A stretch of DNA of 64,000 bases, taken from positions 10,258,286-10,322,285 of the forward strand of contig OZ316898.1 in NCBI GenBank assembly GCA_973895155.1. Reading direction: 5' to 3'. A program made the translations under genes and the position numbers. The notes under the pieces are model-generated. The model was not told where the DNA came from. It made no database searches and saw only the letters and a list, made by a program, of their open reading frames with translations. The stretch is from Marsupella aquatica (Eukaryota; Plantae; Marchantiophyta). Below are positions 1 through 34,768 of the stretch, one piece after another; positions within the stretch are counted from its first letter, which is position 1; the number at the start of each line of letters is the position of its first letter.

Positions 1-2480
1 CATACTAGAAACTGCTACGTGCTGCCTGTAGTTTCTGGGGAAACGTATCTCTTACGAGCAACTTTCTTCGCTGGGAACGTGACAGACCATAGCCAGACCG
101 TCGCTTTCGTCATGTGGATGGACAACAACTGGGCAAATCAATACGTATGGTACCCTGCAGGTGACTTGCTGACTTTCAAGTAATTAGAGACTACGCTCTT
201 GGGAATGCTCTGTAAACACTAACACCTTATGCAGGTACGATAAGGCTTGGATTTCAAGCATGTCCGATAATTTCTATCGTTGTCTAGCTCAAATTAAACG
301 GTCCAGCTCAAAATGCCAAATCTGATATATGACAAATTCAGTCTAGTCGATTCAGCTCTAGGAGACGAGCTAGCATAAGTGAGACAGTTTGATGGTAGGG
401 AGGGGATGGTAGGGAGGGGATCGAAGTCATAAAAAGTTGGCATAATTTGTATCGCAAAGTTCTGGATTTCAGCTGCTTGGATTCTCCACTTCATTCATGT
501 AGAAACCCATTGATTAAGTTAATAAGGGGTTCGAACAACGCCAAAAGTCTGGATTACTTACCGATGTGACTAAAACCGCAAGTTAATACTCGTGTGCTGG
601 AGATGTGGCTTGGAAGTTTGGATTGACAGCAGTGCTGTGCAGGTTCAAGTTTTTACAAATCATCTTATGATGAGTTTATCTATTCCCCTTCGAGAAGCAA
701 CTTAAACTTGTGCATCGTTTTGGACCCTGCTGGATTGATTACTTTCATATCTGCGTTGGAGCTTAGGCAGCTGGCAAGGGGTATGTACGCTTCTATTTTA
801 GCGCCAACAGCCGTTCTACAACTGGCGAACAGATCTAATTTCGGACCAAACGAAACTAGCACCGTCAAAATTTGGAGGTATGTAAACCTGAAATGCCTTT
901 ATTGATGATATTCTGTCACCTTGTTCGAGAAGTTGTGGAGTCAAGAGTAGTATCCATTGACGTACTCATGTCACGCAATATGACCACTAACGGGACTGGC
1001 ATATATCCATATAAGGTGACAAATCACACAAATCACTGGGCAACACCTTTCGATTCTCACATAACGTTTGCCCATCACTGGGTGATTGATCTACTTACAT
1101 ACTCAACCATAATACGAACCTACAGGCTTCTTGTTGAGTTCAAGCGAGCCGTTTAGTTCGTTCGAGACCTTCATCTCTTCTGTTTTCATTTCCCTTTGAT
1201 CTTCATGTATGGCATGCCAAACAACATCCTGCAAGACTGCAATTATCTTGCAGAGACCTTATTTAAAAGGCCGGTACACACCTCAAATGAGATAAAAATG
1301 CCATTTACATGCCACAAGAGGCGAGCCTTCGCTGCTACTGTGGGCGGATGATTACGTGCAGGCCCTTTTCCACATACAAGTGTTACGATGTAATAAAATA
1401 TTTCGCCTACAATGCCTCCAGACACCTATCCTTAACTTTTGCAGATTCCGCATCTAGGAGCAGGTCTATCGTCATTTGGTCTAAGATATTACCAATAGCT
1501 GGATTTGCAGTAATTGTTAAGAAGGTTTTCAGTACGTCTGTTGAATGTTACTCCTCGCTCTACAGTTGCTTACGTCTTTACATCAGATGATTCTTATCAC
1601 AGGTACCCTGATGATGCTTACGACAGGATCTGGACATTGCCGAGTTTACCCAGCAATACCTTCACATCACTACGTAACAGCAGTATTTCCCTCTCATCCA
1701 ATTCTATCGCTCATGACCCAGATCAGGCGCCATTATCGGTGATGGAGGATGCTTGGGTTGTAGACGGGTCCAGCCCTATTGTATATACGTTTGATTCTTT
1801 CGGCCAGTCACCTGTTGGTATTTACACTGCGGCGTATTTCGAGGAGCTCGACGGCAATGCTTTTGGCAACAATGTCCGCGGAATGAATTACTATTTGAAT
1901 GATAGTCTCGTTCAGTCGTTCAATGTCACCAATGAACCGTTGGAGATTCATCTCCATTCTCATAGCTTGGCCAATTCGCTGAACATCTCTTTTACAAAAG
2001 CTGCGTGGTCGAGCTTCTCACCCATCTTGAATGCCTTCGAGCTGTATACAACGTGGACCTTCAACACATCGACGACTGCTGCCGAAGACGGTGAGAGTAT
2101 CTGGACATTATTAGTCTCTATTAGTTCACCCGCATCAGTGTTGTTGTTTGTGACTGCACAGAAGGCTGCATCTCGTTTTCTTAGATAGACATCAATTGTT
2201 AAAGCAACGGTACGTAGCTTCGTCAGGGACCTCAAATGGCTGCGGATCTCACTTGTATGTTTTTTATACTGGCAGTGAGCGCTATCGAAGCTCTGAAAGA
2301 CCACTTCAACTTGACGGACTGGACTGGCGATCCATGTCTCCCCGCATCAACATTTGATTGGTTGGATTGCAATGATGATTCTTCTTCAACCAAGCGCGTA
2401 ACCAAGCTGTGAGTTTCTCGTTTCATTATACAACACTAGGAAATGTAGGCGAGCGACGACTTACTCTCAACCACTCGATA

Positions 2481-4107
2481 TCTATCTATCTACAATTATA
2501 ATATGTGATACCACCATTTTTTGGTCCTTAGTCCTGTTAGGAAATGTGCTCTGGGCGGGACCCTTTTTGGTCCTTAGCCGTGTTAGGAAATGTGCTCTGA
2601 GCGAGGGGAATGATCGATAGTCATTAGATCTGTTCAATGTTTTTCCTTATATTCCGTGCCCCTACCTCTCTCCCTCGCACGCACACACGTCCTGTTAGGA
2701 AATGTGCTGTGGGCGGGAATGATCCACAACCATTAGATGTTTTCAATGTTTTTCCTTACCGTTCGATCTAAAAAAGGATGCCCCTGTCTCCCTCCCCGCA
2801 CACACCGCCTCTGTCGGTCGTCAGGAGGCTCTCCTGCCTTCCTGACGAGCGCCTCCTGCCATCCCAGGGCCAAAGTCCTCCCATGGCACCATACAAAGTA
2901 TGTTGCAGGTTTATCTGCATTTCTCATAAAGGTAAGAATAAGTTCATGGAATGCAAAGTACAAGAAAGTGCAATATATTAAAGTATATCGGTACTAGCGG
3001 TACACTGTACAAACTGTATAAGGTACACCTTATGCTATACAATAATAATTACCTTACTGCAATCCGACTTCTTTCTATTAAAAAACAGTTGCCATAAAAA
3101 TGAATCTGATTTCTAATATTCTTGGGGTGAGCCAAACTAAGCCAGAAAAAATTGAATAGAGTTAGAGTGAAAAGACTCAAACGTCAACGTTTTTAGCTAT
3201 CTTTATTCTTTCTTGATTTAGATAGGATATGTTTTTGCACAGAAAACTAAATATTTGTTTTTACGTAATCTAGGAGGGAGTGCCGTAGTCTCCTCTTTTT
3301 GTCATATGTGCTCTCTTTTATCATATGTGTTAATTGAATGTAAAGTCAAGAATTCCTTTGATTATTCTTTTTTCTTTTGTCATTTAACGCAGTCATTAGG
3401 CTTTCATTCCTTCACTATTCACTTTTTAAAGATTCCTTCCTCGTCAGCTTAAAAAGTAGTCACGATTTCCCTCATTGCCCTCTTGTTTGCTTAGTGCTCA
3501 CTCTTTTATGAATCACATTTCTCTACATTTCAACCGTTTCATTTTGCAAACAGGTATGCTATCAAAATTTAGTATTCAATTTGTCATTCAACATGTAATG
3601 AAGCTACACTTGTGCACTAGTGCAAGTGATTCGGGTACTTTATTGCTGTCATATTGAATTCCCGATTGAATTGATGAAACAGCCGAGAGAGTTCATTCAT
3701 GGAGTGAAAGTCAGGTCTAGAAATGCAAGTCAACTCAGATATTTTACAGCTGTCACAAAAACACTGTGAAACAGCCGAGAGAAAAATTATAGATATAAGT
3801 GATAGATGTCCAAAATCTGCTAAACTCCAAAATATGCTACGGAAAAAACCTCCACACAACACAAAGAGTGTTATGTATTGAGAAAGCGCACAAACCAGAG
3901 AAGCCACCAAAATATATTGCTCCTAGAAAATAAATAATCGTCAGTTACGTGCATTGAGGAGATGCACAAAACCAAAATACAATTGCAACCATTATAATTA
4001 TATGAAAAACTGTCACCATATGTCTAAAAGGATGCCACTCTTCAAATCTACCCCACCTAAATAATATACATTCTATCAAGCCTAGATTGAGCAAGCCTTC
4101 CTGCTAG
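2481..4107 (+). mobile_element. Non-autonomous Helitron-like element
   Basis: Starts A|TCTATCTATCTACAATTATAAT and ends CTGCTAG|T (AT target, TC...CTAG termini). Three internal copies of tgttaggaaatgtgct.tg.gcg between ~2533 and 2717. The 3' GC hairpin is not clearly preserved. Confidence 0.45.
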
Positions 4108-4125
4108 TGGGTAGTATATGGAAAC

Positions 4126-4521
4126 TGTTAGGTTATGCCTCTAGTGTAACTTTAATTACTTCCATAGTACTAGTTAGGTTTTAGCACACTAGGATAACAC
4201 TTGTTTGAATTCCAGGTTCCATAGACTATGGGAGTGGATATAAGTTGTACCCGAGGGGAACACAAGCTTGACATACTCACACTTACAGGTTGGAGAAAGA
4301 ATGAGGAGGTGAGAGGGTTAGCTATGACACGTTTAATATATGGTTTCTCATTATTGGATTTCTCTCAGAGAGGAGTGGATGTAACCCAAAGTGGATGTAA
4401 CCCAAAGTGGATGTAACCCGAACAGAGTGAATCACAGTGAATCACGTACTTTCAGTGTAATTTATGGATGCTTGTTCCGATGTGTTGACACTGAACTCTT
4501 TTTGTCTAGATTTATCACACA
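4126..4521 (+). mobile_element. Solo LTR (copia-like), 396 bp
   Basis: TG...CA termini flanked by a 5-bp TSD GAAAC (4121-4125 and 4522-4526). The internal gtggatgtaacc...gtgaatcacgta motif resembles gtggacgtagcc...gcgaaccacgta in the copia LTRs at 29043 and 34769. It contains a 16-bp unit present three times. Confidence 0.85.
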
Positions 4522-4715
4522 GAAACCCTGATACGTAAACCTCTTTAAACCTTAGATGTCATATTTTATGCGCAAAGGGACTCCTCAACTAAAACTTGAG
4601 TGCATTAATGGGTTCTTCATTTGATAAACCAACATTCCATGAGATATCTTGGGCTAGGGGTTTACACAAAACATGTACTGATATTTACATCGAAGAGTAG
4701 CTCCCTACGTCCAAA

Positions 4716-5114
4716 TTAAGCTGAAAATGCACGAACCACTTTCTCAATAGCTTCTCGGATGTCCAAGTATGTGTCTCCCGTGTAATCAGGGTGAAAACCT
4801 CCCTGCAGAACACATGGAAGAAGATTGGCATTGTTGACGCTACACAGACCTTCCTTGTCAGGACGATGAGAACTTTCCAGCTCCACGGAGTGCTGAGAAA
4901 GATGATGGTATGGAAAGATCCTTCGAGTAACTTTACCGCACAAATTAAACTGACCTTCAATCCAGTGATGATTACTGAATATAAAAAAGAGTTGGAGTGA
5001 ATGTTAGACATCATGAGCATGAATCAATGAGGTCACACCTGCATGTAGACCTCTATAGCTCCACTTTCCCATGCCTTAATCGCTCTGCGATCGAGAAATC
5101 TCCTCTAAAGATAG
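4716..5114 (-). pseudogene. fbiC: Two-exon remnant of FO synthase (CofH-like radical-SAM domain of FbiC)
   Basis: Exon 5114-5039 (LSLEEISR/RRAIKAWESGAIEVYMQ, one frameshift) joins through a phase-0 GT-AG intron (5038-4803) to exon 4802-4716 (GGFHPDYTGDTYLDIREAIEKVVRAFSA*). This matches the recalled CofH/FbiC consensus LSLEEI.RRA.EAWE.GATEVCMQGGIHPD.TG..YL.I......HAFS. Confidence 0.75.
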
Positions 5115-8100
5115 CCTGGGTGGTAGGGGTTACCGAGAACCACGACCAGTGGTAGGCAACAAAAGATTCATGATCTCCGACTTTGTTCAAGTAGGCTAGT
5201 ACGATCTTTTAGCATATTTGATATGGTATCTTTCGTGCCTCGGACCATCATACTGCAAAGCGCATTGGTCGTTCCATTCAAGTTCCCATCTCTAGTATAT
5301 TAATTATATATATATTTAGTATATATATTATTTGTGCACCATGAAGTTCATTGGAGTTCTGAGAGCAAGAAACTGTCTTCTTACCGAAGAGAGTACATGA
5401 CTGCCTGCAGGAATCTGGCAAATCGAGGGTTCGCGGGAACATTCCATTGGAAACCTCAAATCTGACAGCAATGACTGACTTGTAAGTTTTGCTCCATATA
5501 TGCTAATATTTCAAGCAGATTTTGCTCGTGCTAAGGTATCTGATCGACTGGTCGAGTGACCAGATTGGAATTTTGTCTACGCGAAAGGAAAGGTGGACGG
5601 GAGTACGTCCTCTACTTAGCTCATCCATCCAGAAAAAGAAATCTCAACGCCTTGAAATTTCTCTCGATAGTTAGAATTCTCCAACCTAGGGACCGAAGTA
5701 CGTACGTTAGACGGATCTACATGCATACAAAGTCTTCAAGCACACAAAGCGAAGAATTCAAATTATTTCGCAAATCAATAACCCTGGAGGTAATGTGTAG
5801 GAGTAAATTGAGAAATGGCATTTTCATTCATATACAGAGCTCAAATACATATCTATCTAGCTGACTATATATTTACTAGTTAACCCTTCAATGTTTTTTT
5901 CTTCTCTGTCAGACAGTTCATATAATTTATGGAACTAGAATTGTCGGTTGCTAAGGTAACTCGTTAAACGCCAGTCATTCGAGCTCGAGATTGTATTGAA
6001 TTCTGACTCTTGCCTCTTAGCTACGTTTTGATACTACATGGTAGTCCACAAGCTATCCGACGAGATCCTGGCCTAATGATGGGCTCCTTTAGTTATGGCT
6101 CTTAGTTGGTATTTTCCTCAGGTTACTCAACAACAACAGCTTCAATGGCTCGATTCCAGACTTTAGTGCTCTTGCTCATCTTCAAAATTTGTAAGTATTT
6201 GGCAGTGTTTTCCACTGCACCTGTTTAATTTGCTCTCTGACTGTCGGAAACCTGGTAGAATCTGACGGTTCGTGGTCCAATTTTAATTCAGCCTAAAAGC
6301 AGGTACTTAAGTAATTAAGCATATGGTTGAGCATATAAGCAATCGAGCCTTCGTCGGTCGAACACCCGGCATGAGCCAGTTAAAATATGTATTTTGTTGG
6401 AGTTTACGGCTTCGGATTTCCAAATTTCCCAATTTCCCTTCGTAGCCGTTGTCCTTATCTAAAGCAATTGTATGTCAGTGAGGCCCGATCCAAGAGGTCT
6501 TCTTACTAGAACCTTGCATGATGCAATTAAGGTACGTGTGTAAAGTTCGAGCTAATCATGAGCTGCCAGGAAAATGACTCTATGTCGAGCTTTGTTGTAT
6601 GAAGTTTATCTGTCCAATGAGCTTTACTTCAGCTCAATTTATTGACACCAGATCGTGAAACTGTGCTGAAATGATGAGATCAAACTAACTAGGTGTTCTT
6701 CTGGTTCAACGCCTCCGACAAAGCTACATCACGTGGTTCTCTGACGTGGTTTTGGATTTAATCCTCTGACTGCGCTGTTATTTATTTTGGTTTGTATATA
6801 GACGCTTGGAGAACAACAATCTCAGTGGACCGGTGCCCTCGTATTTATTAACCAAGCCGGGATTGGACTTCTCGTAAGTACATACTTCTAGTATATGATT
6901 CATGTAGTTACGCAAAATTTAAGCTTGATATTTTGAACGTAGCATCCTAATAGAACTAGGGTCATGTCAATGTGTTCGTAGCATGCTCTCGTATCCTAGT
7001 TTCAGGCCTAATTTAAATAAGAATGTAATATTCCAAGCGGTTTGCAACTATCTATTAATGTTTTGACTAGTGCAGAGTCCATCCAGTGCCGAATAGCGTT
7101 TTAATTAAGTAGTTGTCCGATAACATACTCAAGCTCGTGCTTGTTAACTTAGCTTACAATTACTAGCTTCCTGAATCGTTGAGTTCATACAGATATGCGG
7201 GCAATCCTGGACTGTTTATCCCGAGGAATATCTCGGCGGCCTCGAGTAAAACCAAAGCTAGCGTTGGAGCTGTTGTGGGAGGTATCCTTGGCGGCCTAGC
7301 TGCAGTAGCAATAGTCTCAACGATCATATTATATATGTTCTTCACAAGGAAGAGACGTGCTGATGCTAAGATTTTGAAAGTCATAGAACAAGCAGGTCAG
7401 TTCCCGAGACTTGCTATAAGTAATGATGTTACATTGTTCATGAGATCTGGAAATGGAGCGCATAGTTACCTGCCAGTAACGTTGAATTGATAATTGGCAC
7501 ATCTGCATGCTCTGCTCCTACATCCACTTGTTTTCAGCTCCAGTGGTTTCAGGTGATCTCTACAGATGCTAGCACTGAGTATTGTCCAGCTACCTATATA
7601 TCGTTGCTCCATTTGTCAAGTGTTTTCAGCATCGCATTACCTTAATTTCATATTAGTGTTCCGAATGTTGGATTCGGAAAATTACCTGACTTAGTAGAAG
7701 TACAATGCCGTCACGGATCCGAGAATGCGTGTATGATGGTGCATATGATAAACAGTTCAAGCTCCTGCTCTGAATATTAAAGTTTTTTTTGGCACTGGCA
7801 TATATACTGTGCAGAAAATCCGTATCAACTCGAATTCACCAAACTTAGAAAGACTTTAGCAGGATCCTTAACCTCGCTAACCTTGCAAGAGGTAAGCAAT
7901 GTGACAAAGAAGTTTTCTAAGAAACTTGGCGAGGGATCATTCGGGCCGGTATATTACGGAAGGCTTCCAGATGGAACCGAAGTGGCTGTGAAAGTAAAGT
8001 CTGCGGATTCTCGCCAGGGAGAGACCGAGTTCTTTAACGAGGTATGTTTGTAAGACAATTTGTTTTCGGTCATGCTTGAGATTCCCAGATGCATGTCCTT

Positions 8101-10193
8101 GAAGTTTACTTGAATTTTCAAAGGGTCAGGAAAGCTTTGGCTGACCATACATCTTGTGTACAATGTTGGAATTTGACCAATTAACTGAGCTCAGGTATAT
8201 ACCAGATCAATATGAGCTCTTGTTGCATGGTACTCAGCTCACATTGACTGATGTATGTACGTACCCAGGTTGAGGTCCTCTCACGAATACATCATAGGAA
8301 CCTGGTGTCACTGGTTGGGTTTTGTGAAGATGCGAACCAGCAAATATTAATCTACGTTTATGTATCAAACGGGGCTCTTCGGGACCACCTTTACGGTAAA
8401 TTCAGATTTTCCACTACATCATCTACCATCTATCATCTACTCAAATTAATAAGGTTCATAGATCATGGACATTTAAACGTGGAATACTGGTTTCGATGCT
8501 ACAGGGGACAAGTCAAGCAACCGTCTGGATTGGATCACGAGGCTCGACATTGCTCTGAATGCAGCAAGAGGTATGGTCCAGCACATGCCCGGCTTGCTAT
8601 GGGTTTCAAATATAGGCTGTCAGTTAATAAACTGAGTACGTTTTCTTCAGTTTCGAAAACTCGAAGATATCTACTAGCCCATAAAAAAGAAGAGGCCGGG
8701 GTTAAGCTGTGCTTCTTGGAATCTGACTAATAAACAATGAGAAACGGTTTCAATAATTCATATTTGCTGTGTTGTATGATATAATCATTATCTCTTGTTG
8801 TTTATAAATGTTTGAAGGGCTACAGTATCTCCATACAGACTGTGAGCCACGAATAATTCATCGTGACGTCAAATCGACCAATATTTTACTTGACCATAAC
8901 ATGATGGCCAAAGTAGCCGACTTCGGGATCTCAAAGCAAGCCCCCGAAGGAATGGTCACCGGTGTCGATACTCTACTGAAGGGCACGTTTGGCTACATGG
9001 ATCCAGAGTATGCAAAACTGCTATCCGAGCTCTTTCATCCCCGCTTTCATCGTGCAAACACTGTGCTCGGATCTTAGCCCAAGATCCAGTGACTTTCAAT
9101 GCCCAATCTACACCGTCCTTCAATAGTTTGTTTCCAGCTTGCAGGTGAGAGCATAATGTTTTTCTACATGTTGAGTGACAAATCTTGCTAATACTGATCC
9201 TCTGAAAATCCATGCAGATACTTCGACACGCAGAGGTTGACTCAAAAGAGCAACGTGTACAGTTTTGGAGTCGTTCTCTTAGAGATAATTTCAGGTCGAT
9301 CTCCTTATTTTGCGGTACTTCCAGATGGTACCAGTGGAACTCTCATCCAATGGGTATGTTATCATGACAAACCTGCGTTCAACGTAAATCTCGCGAAATC
9401 TAGGTCGATTAGAGATGAAGTTTAACTTACTTTTGCGAAATGTATGTCAACATATACATGCAGGTGCGCAGTGCAGTGAAATACGGGAGCCCAATGGATA
9501 TTGTTGACCCATTGTTGAAAGGAGAATTTGACAAGGACTCTATGACGAAGGCTGTCTCCCTGGCAATCAGCTGCATCGATCCGCAAACAGCGACAAGGCC
9601 TGAAATGGATCACGTTGTGCGAACACTTACAGACGCAATTCAATTGGAACCCTTTTCTAAGGGTATCATGAGCACTCGTTGTGACAGTGATGGGTCTATT
9701 GCCGATGGCGACGTCAAGGCACGAGAACATTTTCAAGATTCTGAGATATATTTCGAAAGTCCCCCTGGGTCCAACGATTCAACTATTATTTCACCCAGAT
9801 AGGTTATAGTTCTTTACTGAAGGGACGCTTTAAAGCTAGCTGGCGGTTCAGTTATCGGAGGTGCACGAGGGGTTCGCAAATGTTCGTTAGGACAAAACTT
9901 TGGGCGGAGTACTCAATTTCCCTTTGCGCGAGGGTTAGATAGGGGAGCGTTTTTCATACAATGTGGCCCAGGGCTGCTCTTTGAACGTCTTTTCTTTTTG
10001 TGAGCTCTTTCAGGTCTCCAAGCTGAAGAGGCAACTCAAACTGTGAATTAGAAGTGTGCAGATTCCAACAGTGCTCAACAATTCCATTTGGATTTGTGAG
10101 TTCTTTCAATTCTCCAAGCCAAAGACGCAACTCAAACTGTAAATTATAAGGTGTGCTTACTCCAGCAATGCTGTTCAATGCTTTGGATACTAA

Positions 10194-10217
10194 GAGCCAT
10201 CTTGCATGTGAGAGTCC
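10194..10217 (+). repeat. Left TIR of the Harbinger element
   Basis: 24 bp; 21/24 match to the reverse complement of 16806-16829; preceded by TAA. Confidence 0.93.
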
Positions 10218-10561
10218 CCAAATTATCGACCCTTTAAGTGATCAGGTGGCACATTCCTACTCTTCGAGCCTTTCCTGCCTCACCCTCCTCTTGTGCCAGT
10301 CGTCACGGCAGCAATTCAGTTTTTCCAAGGACAAGGGCCGGAAATGTTCCGGCCCTTCACCGTCCTGACCTTTCAGATTCACAAAGGACAAAAATACAGT
10401 GCTTACACCTGTCGTTCAAGTGTGCATCGATTATTTTGCCGTGCGGCTTCTCCGCTACTGGTAGTCATAACCGGGGTCGTAACTCACCTGCTACTCCTCT
10501 AGGCACCCTGCAAACTGGCCTGCCCTGCATATGACTTCCGTGAGTGCTCAAGAGGGCCCCT

Positions 10562-10670
10562 ACACTCATCAGGTGCACCGCTTGTCAATCACATTGCGGC
10601 TGTTCTGTCAAAAGTGACACTCATCAGGTGCACCGCTTGTCAATCACATTGCGGCTGTTCTGTCAAAAGT
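10562..10670 (+). repeat. Perfect 54-bp tandem duplication in the left arm of the Harbinger element
   Basis: acactcatcaggtgcaccgcttgtcaatcacattgcggctgttctgtcaaaagt at 10562-10615 and 10617-10670. Confidence 0.95.
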
Positions 10671-12653
10671 ATTTCAGCTTTGATTTCAGCTTCACGAAGA
10701 ATTGTGTATACTCGCTAAGTAAACATTCTACGTCACTTGACTGTGTATTCGTTTCACGTACATTGACAGCTTTGTCATCTGCAAATTGGGAATCGGGCAA
10801 TTGGCAATCAGACCACGTTGGAGCATCTCACCTTGCTGCACCGATTATACTCAGGTTCGTTCATACCCTCATGTTTGGCCCCTGATTGAACAGTCAGCTG
10901 ATCAGTCTATTGATTTCTATCTCGTCCTGTAGTTCAGTACTCATGATAGGGGAAAATGACGATTGACCGGCAATAACGGTCCCTTGACTCGAAGGTTGCC
11001 TAGCTCTCTCACCGGACAGGAGAATGATTGATTGTGTTACAGTGAGGAGTTCACCTCCTTCAATAGTTCACTTCCATGATTTCTACGCTGTCGAACCTTG
11101 CATACGTTCATATGCTTATCACTGACGCATCAATTTTGTTTGAGGGGTTGAATAAATAATGAAGATCATGGCGCAGTTTTGTCATCACCCATGAAAGCGT
11201 CTCCATAGTTTCTGCTTAGCTCAGGGGAAATTCTCCTTATACCTCGTCATAGATCCACCAGAAATCAATCTATAGCATCGCTGAGCTTTGTTGTAGGCTA
11301 AGCTGCATGATCTAATTTGAATTTCGTCTTGTATTTTAGATTCTCTGTAACCATCGACTCCTGTTCTAGTAAACGCAGCTAAGGATAGCCTGCTTTTGTA
11401 CAGTGTTGAACATTTTTTCTCGTGTTTGAAGCCATTGAAGACTCCAGTCTCCATAGGTAGTGGACCTGCTATTTAGAGACGGTTTAATTTTATTCAATGA
11501 AGTTTTATAATTCCACTATCTCCTCTATTGTTGTCGACTACTGAAGCCTACTATAGATGTTAGCACATGATTGTAAAGTGATATATGAACAAGACATCAC
11601 GTATCCCAGTAGAATAAATAAAGAGATATTGACTTGATCTCTTTATATTGTAATCGATTGCATGTGATACAGTAGGTCCACCTCCTTCAATATTTGTTGC
11701 ATGTGGGCTTTCTGGCTTTGCCTTGAAACGGAAAGCTTTCTAAACTGCTCACGATCTTGTAGCAGCTACATAAGATCCAAAAAAGTACACAAAAATAGTC
11801 TCCCATGAGTACATAGAGACTAACTTTTGAGTGGATCGAGTACACAAGGATCTATTCCCTTTTCAGGTATCGTCACTCTGCAACTTTATTCCATTTTCAG
11901 GTCTCATCATTCTCCAACTTCATCACAGATTCTGGTTTTGTGCTCATGGTAAAAGCATGGTCCACCTCCGTCAACTAACTCGTTGCTAGCTTGCTTCATG
12001 GACAGGTGCTTCATTGAAAGGTGACATTTTTCATCAACAGTGAGCCCCCGAAACGTACAGTGGTTGCAAAGCATACAAGGTATGAGAGGCATATCGTTGT
12101 TGAATGTGAAGAATTTACTTTAAATGGAGTCGGATAGAATTGTTTGTTACATTTCTTGAGTCACGGTTTGCAACAGTTCATTTCTGGCTTCACCCGAACA
12201 ACAACTTGACAAAGAAAATTGTCATACTTAAAGTGCAGGTTTGAAACAAGCTTCTTCTTCTTTGCAGCGAGAACTAAGGTATACTTTCGTACCCATTATT
12301 ACCTAAATGTACATTTCTTGTACGTACATACTTACTACCATCATATACACTACTTAATATTCAATACAACTCAGAACTTTAGGGTCTACAAAGCTGTAAC
12401 CTTTCTTTGCGTATTTACAAAGCCTAATCCTTCTTTTCCCTCAACTTACTCCATTCATAGCATTTATTGCTTACACTTCGCTTGGTCTACATGAAAGGAG
12501 TGAGTTTATTTTTCAACTCTTGGAACATGCCGGAAAGTGTACCATATATCCCTACCTTGTTAAATTTTTATATTTTTGTCTAGTGCCTATAAAGTAGACC
12601 TCCAAAGGGTGATTATTATTATTACAATTCCTTTCAGGGGCAGGGACTATTCC

Positions 12654-13232
12654 ATGGAGCCTGGCAGAGATGATTTGAAGAACCTTGCAGAGAAATATAT
12701 GGGGAGGATGAAAAAGGCAAAGGAGTACTTGACTCACGCGGAGTCAGTGTTTTGTGAAGAGCTTTGGCCTGCTTTTCAGATAGAGATGTCTATTGCCAAA
12801 AACCTGGGTAGAGAGACCCAGATATTGAAGCATGAAATTGATAGGTTGAAAGTTGAAAACCAGCAGGTTCACAGTGACAACAAGGCATTGGAAGACCTGC
12901 AATCTGAGGTTGTTCAGATACTGCAGAGGACAGGCCAGAAGCCCAGAGCAATCTCTATGGAGAATGCAGCCCCCGCAAAACTTGTGATAGGAGCACGGGA
13001 ACCCCTGGTCCCAATTTCCCCCAATCTATCAAAGATGATTTCACAGAGAATAGATCCAGGAAAGACACATGCGTTGAAGGGCAAAAGTCCTCTTCCACTA
13101 GTAGATTCTTTGGTGTGTAATGCTTATGTGTCAAATAGCACAGGACCATCAATTCATGAGCGTGATGCTCATCCTGCAAAACCTAGGAAAAAACTTTGCT
13201 TGGATAGTGATTCTCTTGGCCTGGGGCCTTGA
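12654..13232 (+). CDS. Harbinger accessory ORF3: uncharacterised coiled-coil protein (192 aa from the first ATG; possible upstream exons)
   Basis: Open frame 12576-13232 inside the TIRs; splice acceptor ttcctttcag before 12638. Heptad-like segment ETQILKHEIDRLKVENQQVHSDNKALEDLQSEVVQIL and basic C-terminal KPRKKL. Phase-compatible upstream exons at 11901-11948, 12041-12079 and 12177-12278; the last has an in-frame TAA at 12229-12231. Confidence 0.7.
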   Translation: MEPGRDDLKNLAEKYMGRMKKAKEYLTHAESVFCEELWPAFQIEMSIAKNLGRETQILKHEIDRLKVENQQVHSDNKALEDLQSEVVQILQRTGQKPRAISMENAAPAKLVIGAREPLVPISPNLSKMISQRIDPGKTHALKGKSPLPLVDSLVCNAYVSNSTGPSIHERDAHPAKPRKKLCLDSDSLGLGP

Positions 13233-13428
13233 TTGTAGGACCAGATCCTTGTGAAAGGAACCTTAGAGGTAGATAGAAGGTCAAACTTATCAAACCTAGC
13301 TAGTTTTGGCAGTGTACTTTCTATACCATTATGATTCATTGTGAAAATAAATAAATGAATTTTTGCTTGATCATTTTGTGAACTTCTTGACAATGATATA
13401 TATTTGCATTTTATCATGTCCTTTTCAG

Positions 13429-14603
13429 ATGATGAGCCAGAACCTGAGTGGCGTTGCAGGCCATAGTGCATCCTCACGACAATGTGAGCCGTTGCGTGAC
13501 TTGGATCTCAACAATGTAGCTACAGCCTGTCCCACTGATGCACCACGGCCTCAAGGAAAGAGTAAGTTGCCAGATTGGACCAACAAGGAGATGAAGGTTC
13601 TCATTGCAGCAAAGCGGAATGAATATCACAATGTTGTTATGGAAGGCTCAACACAGAAGAAGATGACCAGCAGCAAGTTGAAATGGAAAGCTGTGGCAAA
13701 GTTTATGGTGGATGAGGGATTTACTAATCCTATTCGAGATCCAAACTCTTGTAAGAAGAAGTGGCAGATCATTGAGAGCAAGTTCAAATTGATTTATGAT
13801 TATGAGAAGAAGGAGAAAACCGGGCAGATTTCTTACTTTGACATGGATGACAAACAGCGACGCAATGATCAATTCCCCACTAATTTCTCTGTTGACCTGT
13901 ATGAGGAATTGCTAGAGTGGTATGCACGTATTCCTCGTGTTACTCCACCTACAAGGTTTTTATCTGACATTTCTACTATGGACCGGAACCCAAGGCCAGA
14001 TCCGTTCATCTTGTCATCAGAAAGTAAGAAGTTACTTACAAGTTCTTATCTCAATATTGTACTATCAAGTGCAAGTGGGTTTTTGTTTTTTAATTGATTT
14101 CTATTGTGCAAGTAGTTTGTTTGTATGCATCACACATTTTCATGCCCACTAATATTTTTTGTCTCATTTTCTTTACTTTTCTATTTCTTTTATTTGCAGG
14201 TGATGATGTTGAGGTTGATGAACATAGGTCTGTACCTATGAGCCAAAATCACTGCTCACAACCAACACAAGAGAGTGCGGAACAGAACACTGAGCATATT
14301 GGTGGAGTGAGAGAACCATCATCTCCTCAGGAGTTTTCTGGCCCGAGTAAGAGAGGTGTGAAGCGAAAGGCCTTCAAGTCTAGTAGTGACAAACAAGGCC
14401 ATTTGAAAACCATGGCCAACAGTTGTGCGAAGATGGCATCTACGGCCAAGCGTGATAGTGAAATTCGAGAACGTGAGTGTGAAGTTCGAGAACGACAAGA
14501 GAGGGTTTTAACTGCAGCAATCACGACAACAGCCGAGCAGATGACACGTTTGACTGACGTCCTTATGGAGAAGCTTGCTAGTTCTTCACAACCTTCACAA
14601 TAG
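13429..14603 (+). CDS. Myb/SANT-like (trihelix-type) DNA-binding protein of the Harbinger element, ~332 aa
   Basis: Exons 13429-14023 and 14200-14603 join in frame across a phase-1 GT-AG intron. Three-tryptophan Myb/SANT pattern WTNKEMKVLI...KWKAVAKFM...RDPNSCKKKWQII; KRGVKRK NLS-like motif; C-terminal charged helix. Confidence 0.9.
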
Positions 14604-14789
14604 AGACTTAGCATTTGTTTAGTTTGTCTATAGAAGCAAGTACCTACATTTTCATCAAGTGTAGTACAATGGGCCTCACAACTACATAAGACTACATGAT
14701 GACACTTTCATGCACATTTCAATTGAAGTTTTTATTTCAAATTTGCCTTTTGCAATTGGAAAAACATAACTGATCACAGTCTATTATCT

Positions 14790-16130
14790 CTAGTAAGGGG
14801 CAGCACGACGTCTTTGTTGTTCCTGTTCCCACTCTCTCTGAGGGAGCAAATGGTTCATCATTGCAATACGATATCTACGTCCATTATTGTAAGTTTGATG
14901 TGCAGCAGGGGGACCTCCGGGTTCATAAGGGGGGTCTGGGTCTATCCCCCAAGCTGGGTCATAAGCATCTCCACGGTCAATACGGATGTTGTGAAGAATG
15001 CACGCACAAGTAATGTAATGCGGTAGTCGATAAGGAGCTGGCCGATATATTTTGCGTGAAATAAATCTCCAACTATTCTTTAACTGACCAAAAGCACGCT
15101 CCACGCACATCCTGGTTGAGCTCAACATGTAGTTAAATTCCTTCTCCCGGCTATGCTCCATTGCAGAAGGAAAAGGATTTATCAACCACGGATAAGCAGG
15201 GTAGCCAGCATCGCCAATAACATACTCCCCTGTACGAAATCCTGTTGGTGATGTAAATGTTGGACCTGAGAGTTTTGTATGGTGTACCAAAACATCGTTG
15301 CAAAATCCAGATACTTTTAGAAGTCGTGAGTCTTGAATGCTGCCAGGCCATCCTGCAAAGACATCCAAAAAACGAAGGCGACTATCACAAATACCTTGCA
15401 TGGAAATGCTCTGACCATGCTTGTAGTCACGATAATCAATGGAATTCGTTCCAGGAGGTAACTCCACTTGAAAATGAGTCCCATCAATTGCACCACAACA
15501 ATTTGGGAATCCTTGCAGTTGGCGGAATTCTTCTTTCACCATTGCCATGGCCTCTCCTTGTGGCCAACTCAAATGTCTCCCCCTTGCTCGCACAATTATA
15601 GCCTTCACAAATCGCCAAATGACTTCCGATATGCATGGGACAGAAACTCCAAACATCTCTGAAAGTGTCAACAACAAGCAACCACTGGAAAACCGACGAA
15701 GGGCTATGGCAACCTGGCGCTCAACAGACAATGTCCTGTTTGTCAAATTGCGGAGGCCAGGCGGGGGATTTGTTGTCATGTCTTCTCTAACCAGGTCACA
15801 AATGTACATGAACGTTGCCGGTGACACCCGAAACAAATACTTGAAGCGAACAGGATCCTGCTCAATGACATGCGTGAGATACCAGCCACTCCACTCTCTT
15901 GACCTTGGCTCAATGTAATTCCCCGAAATATGATGATAATCTCTGCAAAATGCATGCTGAATAATCTGAAAGAGTCGAAGCAAGTTAGCAAAATGTGAAC
16001 CATTGTCACATCTTTGTGGTATCGAATTATTGGCAAGAAGAGTGTACAATTGTAGTTGCAACAAGAACAATTGCTGCAAAACAAGAATTGTGGACAATAT
16101 TATTTCCAATTCCTCGTTGGAAAGCACCAT
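14790..16130 (-). CDS. PIF/Harbinger (HARBI1-like) DDE transposase, ~446 aa, intact
   Basis: Single open frame with an HTH region (LSVERQVAIALRRF...MFGVSVPCISEVI), catalytic motifs GAIDGTH, GDAGYP and VERAFG, plus GWPGSIQDSR and ACILHN. Likely 5'-UTR intron at 16175-16297. Confidence 0.95.
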   Translation of the reverse strand: MVLSNEELEIILSTILVLQQLFLLQLQLYTLLANNSIPQRCDNGSHFANLLRLFQIIQHAFCRDYHHISGNYIEPRSREWSGWYLTHVIEQDPVRFKYLFRVSPATFMYICDLVREDMTTNPPPGLRNLTNRTLSVERQVAIALRRFSSGCLLLTLSEMFGVSVPCISEVIWRFVKAIIVRARGRHLSWPQGEAMAMVKEEFRQLQGFPNCCGAIDGTHFQVELPPGTNSIDYRDYKHGQSISMQGICDSRLRFLDVFAGWPGSIQDSRLLKVSGFCNDVLVHHTKLSGPTFTSPTGFRTGEYVIGDAGYPAYPWLINPFPSAMEHSREKEFNYMLSSTRMCVERAFGQLKNSWRFISRKIYRPAPYRLPHYITCACILHNIRIDRGDAYDPAWGIDPDPPYEPGGPPAAHQTYNNGRRYRIAMMNHLLPQREWEQEQQRRRAAPY

Positions 16131-16805
16131 TGCCCAATCTCGGGCACCAGCTGAATAGTTTGACCGGAAAAGACCTGCACAAAGAATGAAAGTAAAAATT
16201 AATCTATCAGGCACATTGTGGGTTCGATATTCTTTACACATTGGGGCTTCGGTTTCTTCGCACATTGAAAAGCAGTGAATGAGTTCGTCATACGTACCAA
16301 GAATTCTAATAAATGAAGATCACAATTGCAATGTCGTGCCAAGAGCGAGCAATGTGGATGAAATCGTAAGCACAGTCCCAGCACTGGCGGAGACAACAAA
16401 CGTAGTGGCAAGCCGTCACTCTGCTGGAGTCCTTGAGCACTATGTGTGTTAAATGAGCTGGAGTTCGGAGGTTGCAGAAGTTTGCTGCAGGCCGGGAACA
16501 AGAGAAGTGAGCACTGTGCATGGTAATACGGGAGTTTGAAGAAAGTAGAAATGAGAAGCGAGCATTGTCGCATGTAATCCGGGTTATAGAGGGACATGTG
16601 ACATTTTACAGGGACATCGTTTTTGCTGCAGGAGCTCCCGCATACCGGCCTGTATTCTCAGGGTGGAAACGACAGAGTGGAAACGACAGAGAAGGACATG
16701 CTACCGAGTGGGAGCATTGCACGTATTGATTTGGAAGATTCTGGTTTGATTTGGTCACCTACTTTTTCCCTACATTCGTGGGCAGGTAAGGGCCGGTTTT
16801 TTATA

Positions 16806-16829
16806 GGACTTGCACATGCAAGATGACTC
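16806..16829 (-). repeat. Right TIR of the Harbinger element
   Basis: Reverse complement matches the left TIR; followed by TAA. Confidence 0.93.
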
Positions 16830-17399
16830 TAAGTCGCAAAGTTGTGCTTTGCACTTCTCTTGCAGTTCTGGAACATTGTACTCGTCAGCAGCCACAAAAG
16901 GAGTTCTGCTTGTACTCGTTGCAGCCACAAGGACAAAATTTGTTCGTGCCCTTGGCCAGGTCGGTTATCATTAAAGCACTAACCCGATGCACTATTGCAA
17001 CAAAGTGTATAGAGGTGAGAAAACATGTCCATGTGATGAAAGATGTCGAGGAATTGTAATGTGTAAAAATTCATTACAATGACTTGATATTCAATTGGCC
17101 ACATGGGATTTGATTCAACCAAATTACATGACTTTTTTTTAATACATGGGTCTACAGCCAAACTAGCTAGCTCTTAGGGATTTTATCAAAACTCTTAAAA
17201 ACTTTTAATAATTACAACAAGTTTAGGAATATTTTGTAATTTTATGTGGAAAAATAGGAAAAACCAAACCTTTCATATGACTTCAAACTTTTTAAAAGTG
17301 GAAAACCCAAGTTTTTTCAAATTTTAATTTTGTTTATAGTCAAGTTTTTAGTCCATATAGAAATGTAGACCCCTAACTATTATACAACAGTTGCGTACC

Positions 17400-23060: not shown

Positions 23061-25052
23061 AGAAATAGATCGTGGTGCAAAAGATATTGTTGAATAAATA
23101 TTATGATTGTTAAAATACATTATTGCACAAAAACTTTTGTTGAGTGAAAGATATCATTGTGCAAAATAGTGGCTACGGCAGCCACAAAAGTTCCCTTTTA
23201 TTTTTTAATTTTTTCTCCTTGCACAAAAACATTATTGAATAAAAGATGTCATTGCACAAAAGACCGGCTATGACAACCACAAAAGTATAACAAAATGAGA
23301 GGTGTTTTTTTCTTTTTTTTCTCTTATGTTCCTTTTAAACTTACCTTAACCTCCCCCTTTTCCCCATTTTCCTATTTTTGGTCTCCTCTTTTTCACATTC
23401 ACCATCACTCCACCCATTTGCCGCCCCCCTCCCCACCCATGTGAGATCGAGGGGCTACACTACATTGCCAGTGTGCCCCTCGCCCAACACCTTGCAATCA
23501 ATGCCCATGCATCCCATGCGCTTCAGTGGTGGACATTGCCACCCAACGGTCTCACCAATCCCAACACCCACGCCTAAGTGCCCTTGGTGCCCAAGCGCCT
23601 CCACGGAATACCTCGAGCAAGCAACCTAGTGCCCCTTGCACCACCAGCGGCCCCTCCCATACAAAGTCGCACTTGCTCTCCAACATGACCGCTACTCAAC
23701 GGTCCTCACTATTTGTACAAGCAACCAAACATCTCGGTAAGTCACCCTTCATGATCTAGATCTCCCAAGTCTAGCATCCTAAGTCAAGCTCAACAGACAT
23801 TGGTAAGTAGGTCAGCGATGGGTCCTCCCAATGCCTTAAGCCAAAACTAGAACCGACACCCACTGTAGGTCTAGAACAACTCCTTCCTTGGGCGCAGCCC
23901 GGGATCCCCCTTGTACCTATCCATCACCAACTAACCGCCCTGCCCCCAGGACATGCTCATGGCCCAAATAGCATAGCTTGTCCCGAAGCTCCCAAGCTTG
24001 TTCCTACATGCCGGGACCAAAATGGCCCCGACATTAGCAACCAATTCCCAGTTCTCGCCCCACTGATGGTCTAGGAGCCAAGTGCCCTTGGAACTAAACC
24101 TCCACGCCTACTTGGCCCTACCTCCCCAACGCAAGCTCCCTTGAGAGACTGAATGCGGCTTGGCTGCTGTTTCAACAGGATTTGGCAAGCGGGCGAGATA
24201 GCACCCGCAAACCTCAAGAACCTATGGCACCCCAGGCCCAGCTGAGCTCAGGAGGATGTAGCCCTGATATCTTTCCAACGCACCCAAGAAGTCCACCAAC
24301 GGACTTCTCGTTGGAAAGTTATCATCGTTTCCGTTTGATATTTTCCCTTAGTGTCGCGACCGCTGTAGCTCACGACTTCGGCTCGCCCTTAGCCCCCAGG
24401 GAGACACCACTCCACTCATATATGTTTCTGGAGACCTGCCACCCCCAAACCAACTTTGGTTCTCAAACTTTTGGTCCCCAACCCGGACCCTATCCCGCAT
24501 GTCTGGGCGCCCCACCAACTGACAACGCCCATAACTTCTAGTTAGGTGTCCGCAAGCGGAGTGCCTTAGCCCATTGTGATCTGGCTGACCTAGTGCTCAT
24601 ACCTAGGCCCTCAGATCTCATGGCCGCCCAGGGCCCCTGATCGGCCAAACTTGGATCGGGCCATAACTCAAGAGGAGCTCTCACTCAAGCCCTCAGAACT
24701 CAAAGTTCGTTCGGAGGTCCGGACGGTTGACCTTGAGCCCAGCCCTTTTCCCCTTGACCTGACCAGCTCTCAACTAGTCTAAGTCCTTAGTGTGTGTCAC
24801 CAGCTTGGCGTCTTGCCTTCGCCCATGCCACGTCTCATTGCCCACAATTAGTCTCCCAATGCTAAGTCCTCCCCGGATGGCCTATCCGGGCCTGGATCAT
24901 AAGGGAGCTTGGTGTCAGAGTCAGCAACGCCGGAGCTAAGTGTTAACTAAGGTAGTCGAGTTCCACAACTGCTTCACTGTCTTTGGGCCTAGCTTATTAC
25001 TTTTGTTTTTTGGCTTTGAAAATGACACTACAAATGACTCTAAATATCACCA

Positions 25053-25923
25053 CAATTAGTTCGTTGACCCCTTGGCTAATAAAATCAGGGGGAAAGAGTC
25101 GATCTGAGCCGTCTCCATTTCTTATCTCCGGAAATCTTGTCCGTCCATCATAATGGCCAATCTATGGCTCAAAAGAAAGATCTCAAATAGATCTATGGAT
25201 GTGTTCTGCCCGTTTTGCAAATGGGTTAATATTTTTCAAATGAAAATTAAACAAATATTTTTCAAATGAAAATTAAACAAATCCAAGCCTTCCTAGCCAT
25301 CGATTTTGTTGATTTTACGATCTTTGCTGTCCATTTTGTAATGCCTCTAGAAATCTTATTCATCCATGTTAGAAGGCGATCTAGGGTGCAAAAGAAAGAT
25401 CTCAATGAGATATACGACTGGGTATTTTTTGTTTTGAGAATGAGTAAATAGTTTTGAGTATAAAATTTGATGAACTTTCAAGATTCCAGCCATTCCTCCT
25501 CCCTGATCATGGGTTTCTATGTGCTCTTCCTAGCATTAATGGCCGTACAATACGAGAGGTCCTTACATACCGGGAGTTGGGGTTTAACAAGGAGGTTATC
25601 AAGTTAGTTATTAGTCATTATTTATTATATGAAAAATACTTTTTATAGATCTTTGAATTTAAGTTTTAAAGTTGAAAATGTAACTAAAACGGTTACATAG
25701 TGACAGTTTTAACCGTCTTGCTCTTTGCATTTCCAATGTTTTTACTTTTCTTTTTATGGCACGGCGTCCCAAAATTTACACCCAAATTGACACAAACACG
25801 AATGAAAACTATAAGTTTGACTCACAAAACCGACGAGTCTTGTTTGTTACGGTTGTTGTTGACGTGGCACGCTGTGGTGCCAGGAATTTTGGAAAGAACC
25901 TCTAGTGGGATCCGTAAATATTG
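25053..25923 (+). mobile_element. MITE-like non-autonomous element, copy A
   Basis: Collinear and highly similar to 45984-46829 over its whole length, with unrelated flanks. Imperfect TIRs (CAATTAGTTCGTTGACCCC and CAATATTTACGGATCCC). Extra ~27-bp internal tandem duplication at ~25230-25282. Confidence 0.8.
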
Positions 25924-26552: not shown

Positions 26553-29042
26553 TCACACTAAACTCAATTCACACTTTGGCTTTATTGCTTACATTTGACC
26601 AGATTTTTTAATTTTGGTGCCTTGCAAATTTGAATGACGATCACTCTAAAAAGTGGCGCAAGTGTGTAATATAGTTCTTGATTCAGAGTACATGAGATGA
26701 TTCTTATGTGACATCACCCAAAATTTGCCTTTTTTCTATTAAAGTACACACCTTGGAAGGAGAATCTTTTGGGGCATGACAAACTTTTGTATTTTGGTAT
26801 AGGGGCATTAGAGCACTGAGAGGACCTTTCCCTAGTATGAGAGGACCTGGAAGTACGCACCTCTGGTATGTACCAGTATTTGTGCCAACGCTGGGTAGCC
26901 AAGTGTGGAGCAGATACTTAACCGCTGAAAGCATCTAAGTAGGAAGCGAGTATGATTATAGAAGAAAAATGTGTTAATTTTGCATTTTCTTCTGTTTATT
27001 TAATGGTGCCAAAGGTAAGAAAAAGGGGAAGGACTGGAGTGGCAAGGGAGTGAAAAACTTGGAAAAACACGGATAGAAATATTAAAATGTTCCCCTCCCA
27101 ATAGCATTGTGCAACAGCAACTTGACCCCGTAAAGACCTGAGGGACCATCATCTCTCTTGCACTCCCTTGCACCCTCCCAATCCTTGCTCTCCTCATAGT
27201 TTTCACAACAATAACAACATCTTTGTCCAAAATAAAATATAAATGCAAAAGCGAAGGCAACTGTTTTTACATTTTTTGAAAAATGGTCCCAAATTTTGTT
27301 TTTCCATCTATAGCTCCAAAATTCAAAGAATGCTCCTTGAATTAATGAATGCCAATAACTAAGATCAACCTCCTAACATTTTATCTCCACAAAACCCGCC
27401 TTGCTTGACATGCCCATCATCTCTATAAGTCTTGCTTGTGCTCTAATTCTTTCCCCAATCAGGAGCCCAACTCTTTCTTCAGGGTCCTCACTTCTTTTCT
27501 TTCGACCCATCATGCCTGAAGAAGTTAGGGGTTTCTTAATTCAATTGGGCGGAAGACTTAAAAAAATTGTTGAAGAAATGTGACTTGGGTGTTGTAATCC
27601 AATTTTGAGAATTATAAGAACTATAGGGGTTTTTTAATACCAAATGTGAGAATACTCCTAGAATATTCCATAAAGTCAGGGGTTGAAATTTACTAAAAAT
27701 TTACTTTATTTTTTTAAGTTTGAGGGTGTTTTTTTCCACTTAGAAAGCTTTGCACTTGATATGGGAACAAGTGAGGCCCCCAAGCTCTTTGCCCCCATCT
27801 GCATCTTTTGTCCCTAATTTTGTTCCATCTTTTGTATCATATATCAACAATAAAGATTTCTTGCCCAACTCTTATCCATGTATTCTCACCACCCATTTGA
27901 GCCCTAGTGTTTAATAGAAACAATGATAAATATGATCATGCATGATTATCATTTGCATTACTCTACATACTACTGTAAGTCATACGAGCCTGCATGCCCA
28001 TTCAATGTTACTAGAAACGATGATAAATATGATCATGCATGATTATTATTCTTTCTATCCATCCCCTTAACTTTCGGTGGGGCCTTAGGGAGTCATAATC
28101 TCTATTATAAACAATAATTTCATTAAATTATAAATTTCTATAATATTATCAGCCCCGCCAAACTGCAGAGATTATCTTTAAAAATTATCGGCCCCACCGT
28201 CTTTTGTATCATCAACAATAAAATTTCGGTGGGGCCTTAGGGAGTCATGGTCCATCTTTACTCAAAAGTAGAAATCTAAAATTTAAGAAAACTATTACCA
28301 AAACAGTTGTGCCTACGCTTCACTATGCAGACCAAGTCATATCACGGACTGAGTCATGAAGGTAGACTTAGATCGCTGATTATAGTGTAGACCAGATGAC
28401 TGTCTCTACTCCCAAGAAGGCTTTAGAATTAACAAGAAAATTGTTACCAAAACAGTTACGCTATTTAAGCAGACTAAGTCAAAGTAGCCTAAATGCTCAT
28501 TCCTTGAGTATTAGTAGAAATGATGACATCATATCTCATCCTTATTTTCATCCACATAAATTTTGGTGGGGCCCTAGAATCATGGTCTGGAGACCCCAAG
28601 TTAAATCTATGACTCCATAGAGAAGAAGCATTTGGCAAAAAATCAACCAAGACTCTATCAATCATGACTTTTAAACACTTAGACTCTCTTACCAAGCAAA
28701 CATGACTCCCTTGGAAAGAAGTGTTGCCAAAACATAAATCAAGTACAACTCCATAAAGAATAAGTATTTGACATAACATAACCAAGACTCTATCAATCAT
28801 GACTCTTAACCAAAGTACTAGGCTCCCTTGAACACTTAGACTTTGTTACAAAGCAAGTATGACTATGTTAGAAAGTATTGTTGCCAGAACATAAACCACG
28901 ACTCCACAAGGAAGAAGTCAATGACACAAAGTAGATCGGGCCGGAGCGCGCGACAAAAAGTGAAGGGTGCTAAAACATAAACCCGAAGTCAATGACACAA
29001 AGTTGATCGGGCCAGAGTGCATGACAAAATCGGGGACAAAAT

Positions 29043-29365
29043 TGTAAAGGTTAACTCAGTCTTGGGTTGAACTATGGTTAGTATGTTAACTAGGGTTAGA
29101 GTAAACCCTAGTTGAAGAGTTGGTCCTTATCTCTTCAACTTCTATGTGGTGTGAGAACACACAAGAGAGTTCTCAAGAGAGAACACAATGACATAGCAAG
29201 AGATGAGAGCTTGAAGAGATGGGAGCTATGGTGATGCTTGAGTACACACATAATCGTTAATAAAGCTTTGTATTCCCGTGGACGTAGCCAACCTAGAGGC
29301 GAACCACGTAACTATTGAGCACGTGTATGTTTGGAGTGTATTTCCTGATCTGATTTCTCCCCACA
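29043..29365 (+). repeat. 5' LTR
   Basis: TGTAAAGG...CCCCACA; matches the 3' LTR except at position 5. Confidence 0.97.
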
Positions 29366-29367
29366 AT

Positions 29368-29379
29368 TGGTATCGGAGC
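29368..29379 (+). promoter_or_regulatory. Primer-binding site (tRNA-iMet type)
   Basis: TGGTATCGGAGC 2 nt after the 5' LTR; one mismatch to the canonical TGGTATCAGAGC. Confidence 0.9.
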
Positions 29380-30536
29380 TCAGGTTTTTTCAGTCGATTA
29401 GGAACTCCATAGAACTTGCTTCAAGCAAAGCGAACAGCGGATGATTTCCTCTTCGAAGCGGAGCTATTGAAAGAAGATCGGACTCAATCTTCTCACAAGT
29501 GTGGAGCACACAACCAGGGGTTCATTTTAGTGAAGCAATGAAGGCCTGAGGTCAGAAACGGAAACAATTGTAAGTGACGGTTTTCAATCTACGTTATCGG
29601 GCAAGAGATAAGGTCAATTTCTCAGATCAGTCTTTTTGATTGTTCTATCGGGACTTGAAACTGAGATACGCTTGAGCGTCTTGTCTTTCTAGACGTTTCG
29701 ATATCAACATCGTTGTATTCCGTCAAACAGTTGAGAAGCAATCTTAATTTCAATTCTCGTTTTTTGAGCTTGAAATTTTGGCTATGGCGAATAACTTAAT
29801 ATAAGTCACTTTCACCAAACTGTTTCTCCCTCATTACTCCACCGTTTTGCGAGTTCTTTATATCGATCTTGATGCCCTCGAAGTCTAGTTTCTGAATCTG
29901 AAATCAGAATTGGATTTTGTCAAAAACTGAGACGGGAATTTGAGTGAATCCGCCGAGGGGTATTTTCTGCCGCGAGTAGTCGCGACTTGCGCGGGCGCGC
30001 GAGGAGGTCGAAAAGTTCGAGGAGGCCTTTCTAGGGCTCGACAGGGCTCGGGCAGGGGGAAGTGCCCCCTGTGAAGTCCCCCACAGGGGCTGTACAAGGG
30101 CGGACGGAATTTTCCGAAAAGATTCTTTTCCAGAGGCTTAAATTTTTACCGAAGGTCAAAGATTCCGAGCGGCAAATAAAATCGGATCAACTTCAACTTT
30201 TGGAGAGACGTACTTGGGGAAGCTAGGCAAGTATTGGTGCGTTCAATTCTGAAAAAGTACACAAGTGGAATCTTTGGCATAAGAGATTCCCTCGAGGGGT
30301 AATTATTTCATCTTTTACCCCCCTCCGGTCGGAGTAAAAATTCTCGGCACTCGAGAGTCCATTTGACAAACCGTTTTCAGAATTCGGAGCGTTACCTTGT
30401 GGGCTACACATAGGAGTGATCAGTTTCAAAATTCATCAACTTTCATTTTTGGCCTTAATTTCACACCCCACATCTGAGCATTCGACGTTTATTTCTTGTA
30501 AGAAGGCGACTCCACACTATATTTGGCATTCCAGCG

Positions 30537-34757: not shown

Positions 34758-34766
34758 AAGGGGGAG
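34758..34766 (+). promoter_or_regulatory. Polypurine tract
   Basis: AAGGGGGAG 2 nt upstream of the 3' LTR. Confidence 0.9.
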
Positions 34767-34768
34767 TT

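Follow-up and report, generated by a model that had tools for sequence, protein, structure and literature searches.

Does a PIF/Harbinger DNA transposon ever carry a third protein-coding gene beside its transposase and its Myb/SANT-like partner? Elements of this superfamily are textbook two-protein DNA transposons, and the domesticated protein pairs ALP1/ALP2 and HARBI1/NAIF1 act on chromatin. The question is raised by a 6.6-kb element in a 64,000-nucleotide stretch of the Marsupella aquatica genome (Marchantiophyta; assembly GCA_973895155.1, contig OZ316898.1, positions 10,258,286 to 10,322,285 of the forward strand), hereafter the window, whose positions are counted from its first letter. 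An earlier inspection of the letters alone (the sequence-only reading) had described the element as an intact three-gene PIF/Harbinger transposon. We arrive at a narrower reading, to which we assign a probability of about 0.55: the element is an autonomous-type Harbinger with the two canonical genes and, in addition, carries a real, lineage-restricted open reading frame (ORF3) that lies outside the conserved machinery of the superfamily.

First, judged on its sequence, the element is an intact-looking, autonomous-type PIF/Harbinger DNA transposon of a well-known kind. It combines a DDE_Tnp_4/Plant_tran transposase with D, D and E residues, a Myb/SANT-like second gene, a 3-bp target-site duplication (TSD) of the TWA type and short terminal inverted repeats (TIRs), so that every feature examined agrees with the earlier claim of an intact PIF/Harbinger with a transposase and a Myb partner. 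The transposase matches DDE_Tnp_4 (PF13359) over the full profile (positions 1-158 of 158, E=1e-31) as well as Plant_tran (PF04827, E=4e-11), and has 62 homologues, the best of them 49% identical. When the transposase is aligned with 12 homologues, the catalytic residue D261 is invariant across the 13 sequences, D352 is nearly invariant, and E389 falls in a conserved VERAFG block. The homologues align only from residue 46, and the ATG at 16130 is therefore probably the real start of the protein rather than the first codon of the open frame.

The Myb gene is convergent with the transposase gene, 186 bp separating their stop codons. Its two exons are carried by the open frames 13363-14097 and 14094-14603, which connect through the Myb intron to give a total of 332 codons. 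Exon A, exon B and ORF3 were each searched separately. Exon A contains a Myb_DNA-bind_4 domain (PF13837; 33.2 bits against a cut-off of 27, E=7e-8), while exon B gives a weak match to the NAM-associated family that remains below the cut-off (E=0.012). The sequence-only reading had taken both frames to be uninterrupted, which is correct for the transposase, open over all 491 codons, and has to be amended for the Myb gene, which is open only after removal of the intron.

Secondly, ORF3, on the same strand as the Myb gene and 196 bp upstream of it, is probably a genuine protein-coding frame, with statistical support from its length, its composition, its codon score, its predicted helix and its heptad pattern. 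The stretch between its bounding stops spans 218 codons, and a stop-free length of this size was equalled in only 1 of 2000 first-order Markov shuffles of positions 10194-13400. Six open reading frames (ORFs) of at least 200 amino acids occur in the window, and the five besides ORF3 are receptor-kinase exons, the Myb exon, the transposase and the polyprotein of a copia retrotransposon. At codon position 1 ORF3 has 62% purine, 31% G and 15% T, like the Myb exons; the other left-arm ORFs lack such a composition, with the exception of 11221-11454 on the minus strand, which equals ORF3 in purine share and nearly doubles it in T. On a log-odds model of codon use, trained on the window's recognisable coding sequences, ORF3 scores +0.096 bit per codon, is the sole positive of its six frames and is positive in each half.

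The predicted product is consistent with these values. AlphaFold, run on the single sequence, returns one helix (residues 3-93; predicted local distance difference test, pLDDT, above 90 for residues 1-90) followed by disorder. Hydrophobic residues occupy 59% of the a/d positions of the heptads in the best register versus 7% in the worst, and the basic KPRKK patch in the tail could serve as a nuclear localisation signal. A role in the cell cycle was considered and rejected: there is no KEN box, and the three generic RxxL motifs and two SP sites are at chance level.

Coding potential on this side of the element is confined to ORF3. The sequence-only reading had proposed a third, multi-exon gene occupying the left ~3 kb; a third ORF of 192 codons is indeed present, but neither the multi-exon structure nor the 3-kb extent survives, the coding-like sequence being limited to ORF3 itself. 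From the element end to the Myb start the arm measures 3.2 kb, of which ~2.4 kb lie to the left of ORF3. In positions 10194-12653 all open stretches of at least 80 codons are negative on the codon model, the few stretches with a slightly positive score span 41-54 codons, and none of the twelve translated ORFs of both arms gave a noteworthy Pfam match. Two tandem repeats lie in the left arm, a perfect one of 55 bp (two copies, 10562-10670) and one of 34 bp (two copies, 85% identical, 11853-11920). No signature of a nested insertion was found in it, neither internal TIRs and TSDs nor a long terminal repeat (LTR), only short inverted repeats at chance level. We read the 2.4 kb to the left of ORF3 as non-coding subterminal sequence.

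Thirdly, ORF3 stands alone in sequence space. No relatives were found by a word-indexed protein search or by phmmer against 1.84 billion protein representatives, in Pfam, in the sequences of the PDB, in the ESM Atlas, or in scans of viral sequences, prokaryotic genomes and metagenome contigs. The phmmer scan was made without length restriction, so that fusions containing an ORF3-like part would have shown. One candidate, a tblastn match in L004 (E=0.035), was discarded as its alignment passes through two stop codons. ORF3 is likewise without similarity to the C-terminus of the Myb protein and to the ORF upstream of the Myb gene in L002, the related element described below.

L002 is the sole related element whose DNA was read across both genes. 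It is a 4.2-kb two-gene element (L002:6256-10472, JGI metagenome contig Ga0590115_0013069) with a transposase 40% identical to the one studied here, and its Myb gene is matched by exon A in tblastn at E ~1e-11. The two elements share the convergent transposase/Myb layout and have TIRs of similar length, those of L002 being 25 bp long and 96% matched, and differ in that L002 is smaller, has only 0.69 kb between its Myb start and the element end, and contains no ORF3-like frame by tblastn or BLASTP. The Myb frame of L002 is itself broken by one in-frame stop (9437-9439). Contigs of the relative with 49% identity (L001/P0001) carry the transposase alone. The gene list of a Taxus locus shows an annotated Myb gene ~2 kb upstream of the transposase; the two are in tandem orientation, with no further annotated gene between them. 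Because ORF3 has no relatives in any search and L002 has no such ORF, we place ORF3 outside the conserved Harbinger machinery.

Several points weigh against the reading of ORF3 as a real, element-borne gene. A single copy of the family was seen, which gives no sign of ORF3 being passed on along with the family or kept by purifying selection, and one long helix is easily predicted and proves little. No transposase relative exceeds 49% identity, and neither the transposase nor the copia polyprotein of the window was on record in the protein collection when looked up by exact match. The host and its close kin thus seem to be missing from the collections, and the absence of ORF3 relatives therefore carries limited weight. 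That absence cannot tell a gene specific to the element apart from a host gene restricted to the lineage, and relatives at 40-49% transposase identity are too distant for a fast-evolving coiled coil to be recognised in them even if it were there.

The arrangement of ORF3 and the Myb gene on one strand at short distance also suits an element with two genes only, in which ORF3 serves the Myb gene as its first coding exon, used constitutively or by alternative splicing, and supplies the DNA-binding partner with an N-terminal coiled-coil dimerisation domain. Because the Myb ATG directly follows a polypyrimidine tract with a CAG acceptor, and because two further ATGs (13393 and 13416, one in frame and one out) precede it within 40 nt and would interfere unless spliced out, the sequence suggests that an upstream exon may be spliced onto the Myb message. 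Splicing from a GT at 13113 would bring the Myb ATG in frame behind codon 153 of ORF3, and a second GT lies past the ORF3 stop, at 13269. The codon-position composition common to ORF3 and the Myb exons also suits such a first exon. Against it, the donor at 13113 is what we take to be only a moderate match to the plant consensus, and ORF3 stays open and coding-like for 39 codons beyond that donor, up to its own stop. Downstream of this stop follows AATAAATAAA (113 nt past the ORF3 stop and 74 nt ahead of the Myb start), which may act as a poly(A) signal for ORF3 and/or as a TATA-like box for the Myb gene. Moreover, the distance from the start of the Myb protein to its domain is ~64 residues in L002 and ~51 here, no coiled-coil exon was detected in L002, and among the 1.84 billion representatives there is no Myb-family protein with an ORF3-like N-terminus. 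Since ORF3 remains open and coding-like past 13113 and the L002 Myb gene starts at a comparable distance from its domain, a separate cistron, which may share its promoter region with the Myb gene or be linked to it by alternative splicing, is favoured over a simple first exon, and we consider the two-gene reading unlikely.

The opposite extension, that ORF3 is a conserved, element-specific third protein, either a coiled-coil adaptor working with the Myb protein and the transposase or an anti-silencing factor, and that the element represents a Harbinger lineage with three proteins in a land-plant group of which little has been sampled, is one we would put forward only tentatively, at about one chance in five; the sequence-only reading had already raised the idea of an undescribed lineage with a third component. 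If true, a Harbinger family that stably carries a third protein would indicate that the system can recruit further partners.

The length of the arm on the Myb side, ~2.5 kb in excess of that in L002, together with the lack of ORF3 relatives among transposon proteins, would also be expected if this copy or its sub-lineage had picked up ORF3, perhaps with part of the 2.4-kb arm, from the host; ORF3 would then be a host gene restricted to the lineage and without a role in the transposon. A conserved host gene is contradicted by the lack of a homologue in any plant proteome in the databases. ORF3 is moreover no fragment but has its own start and stop and is oriented and placed as an element gene would be, no second copy of it occurs in the window, and the nested-insertion signatures mentioned above are missing, so that capture from the host appears improbable. 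That ORF3 is a non-functional open frame, whether a chance ORF or a decaying remnant in a two-gene Harbinger with a long arm, would agree with the lack of relatives, a low recognition value in the ESM Atlas (1536) and the predicted disorder of the C-terminal half, but is made very doubtful by the rarity of its length among the shuffles, by a coding-type composition and codon score that are specific to the frame, and by strong heptad periodicity over 90 residues.

For the preferred reading, an autonomous-type Harbinger with an additional element-borne ORF3, a working model can be outlined. The two-protein mobility mechanism is established for Ping/Pong and other Harbingers, and by analogy the Myb/SANT-like protein would bind the element ends and recruit the DDE transposase, which would excise the element and reinsert it at a TWA site. 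ORF3 would have been acquired, or born, recently as a lineage-restricted gene carried by the element, and would probably share its promoter region or transcription unit with the Myb gene. Such sharing is made plausible by the acceptor directly ahead of the Myb ATG, by the two ATGs shortly before it and by the lack of any ATG from the TATAAA at 12588 to the ORF3 start. The ORF3 product of ~190 residues is predicted to consist of a long coiled-coil helix that dimerises and, behind it, a disordered and partly basic tail, and our best guess is a nuclear coiled-coil adaptor beside the Myb/transposase complex. A requirement of ORF3 for transposition seems on balance doubtful.

Among known systems, extra proteins borne by DNA transposons have precedents. 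VANC of the VANDAL Mutator-like elements is an element-borne additional protein, and the TnpA and TnpD proteins of En/Spm arise from one transcript by alternative splicing; both are analogies, with no sequence similarity to ORF3. The element otherwise resembles the plant PIF/Pong-type transposons (maize PIFa, rice Ping/Pong, Medicago MtPH) in its short TIRs, in its 3-bp TAA duplication within a CTAAG-type target and in the combination of a DDE_Tnp_4 transposase with a separate Myb/SANT-like ORF1, and departs from them in having a 3.2-kb arm on the Myb side and, upstream of the Myb gene, the coiled-coil ORF of 192 codons. Among the published Medicago autonomous Harbingers compared (PMC2213677), sizes reach 5,965 bp, the present element being just larger, and MtPH elements have tandem repeats in a subterminal arm as this one does. 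In the published descriptions searched, two ORFs are given for the superfamily (PMC4482050; PMC2836001), and the abstract of PMC2836001 states that two proteins are needed for movement. Full-text literature searches for a Harbinger with a third ORF returned nothing relevant. We regard the extra ORF as a lead and not as a finding. As a cleanly delimited and apparently intact element without close relatives in public protein sets, the transposon is useful for repeat annotation and is a candidate active transposon.

The limits of the element and its site of insertion can be read at single-nucleotide resolution. As the sequence-only reading had proposed, the element is exactly delimited, with TIRs that mismatch at 3 positions over 24 bp and TAA on both sides. 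A 17-base core of the TIR occurs in the 64 kb at the two ends only, against 0.03 occurrences expected by chance; no subterminal motif common to both ends was found beyond the TIR, and neither a second copy nor a related miniature inverted-repeat transposable element (MITE) was found in the window. The only metagenome hit to the TIR pattern, in contig L003, was rejected as a chance match because this is a GC-rich contig without similarity outside the 24 bases. Once the element and one TAA are taken out, the joined flanks align without a break to positions 44900-45300, so that the two sites form a true filled/empty pair. The empty site proposed earlier is thus in the right position, though its single triplet is TGA instead of the expected TAA, one of many substitutions between the paralogues.

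The pair belongs to a segmental duplication within the window (4-10191 versus 37919-45070, 80-87% identity; ~87% around the insertion site). The duplicated block encodes a malectin-like/leucine-rich repeat (LRR) receptor kinase, and the Harbinger lies at the right edge of its first copy. Insertion of the Harbinger into TAA (core CTAAG) came after this local segmental duplication. The restored target reads A-C-TAA-G-T and the empty site C-TGA-G. A CTAAG/CTTAG core is the target preference of maize PIF. NuwaII elements are defined by C|TNA|G targets (PMC4482050). The target of the present element (C-TAA-G, or C-TGA-G at the empty site) is compatible with both TWA and C|TNA|G and by itself makes no decision between PIF, Pong and NuwaII. 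Disruption of a BTB-like host gene by the insertion was also considered, two minus-strand frames (16833-16955 and 9954-10178) abutting the element, and was rejected: these frames have no Pfam match and the paralogous site has a stop.

Features of the Harbinger element and of its insertion site (window positions)
Feature	Position	Strand	Basis or remarks
PIF/Harbinger element, ~6.6 kb	10194-16829		Inverted-repeat scan (one long pair spanning the region) and reading of the ends
Left TSD, TAA	10191-10193	.	Direct reading; same as 16830-16832
Left TIR, 24 bp	10194-10217	+	21/24 complementary to right end
Long left arm without coding signal	10218-12587	.	Codon scores, Pfam
TATAAA, candidate core promoter	12588-12593	+	61 nt upstream of ORF3 start, no ATG between
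ORF3, 192 codons and stop	12654-13232	+	Predicted helix (residues 3-93), then disordered tail with KPRKK basic patch
AATAAATAAA, possible poly(A) signal (ORF3) and/or TATA-like box (Myb gene)	13346-13355	+	
Myb exon A, Myb/SANT-like domain	13429-14023	+	Myb_DNA-bind_4; begins ATGATG right after polypyrimidine tract and CAG acceptor
Myb intron, GT..AG, phase 1, 176 nt, T-rich	14024-14199	+	Direct reading
Myb exon B, stop TAG at its end (14603)	14200-14603	+	Sequence reading; acidic, then basic, helical C-terminus
Transposase, single open frame of 491 codons and stop	14790-16265	-	Pfam DDE_Tnp_4
Right TIR, 24 bp	16806-16829	-	Pairs with left end
Right TSD, TAA	16830-16832	.	Direct reading
Paralogous empty site, TGA	45070-45072	.	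Second copy of the duplicated receptor-kinase block

Other features of the window are separate from the Harbinger. A Ty1/copia-type retrotransposon (29042-35092) has an open polyprotein frame of 1115 codons (31227-34574) and a gag-like ORF (30841-31329), and is bounded by 325-bp direct repeats (29042-29366 and 34768-35092); as these are 99.7% identical, it is probably a young insertion. A small insert of organelle origin is the probable source of a 142-nt match to bacterial-type large-subunit rRNA (26817-26958, plus strand; Rfam RF02541, 66 bits, model positions 2663-2807). A dispersed repeat pair is found at 25052-25918 and 45983-46823 (95-96% identity), and an open frame at 53456-53962 on the plus strand resembles, by eye only, an exon of a glycosyl hydrolase family 9 endoglucanase.

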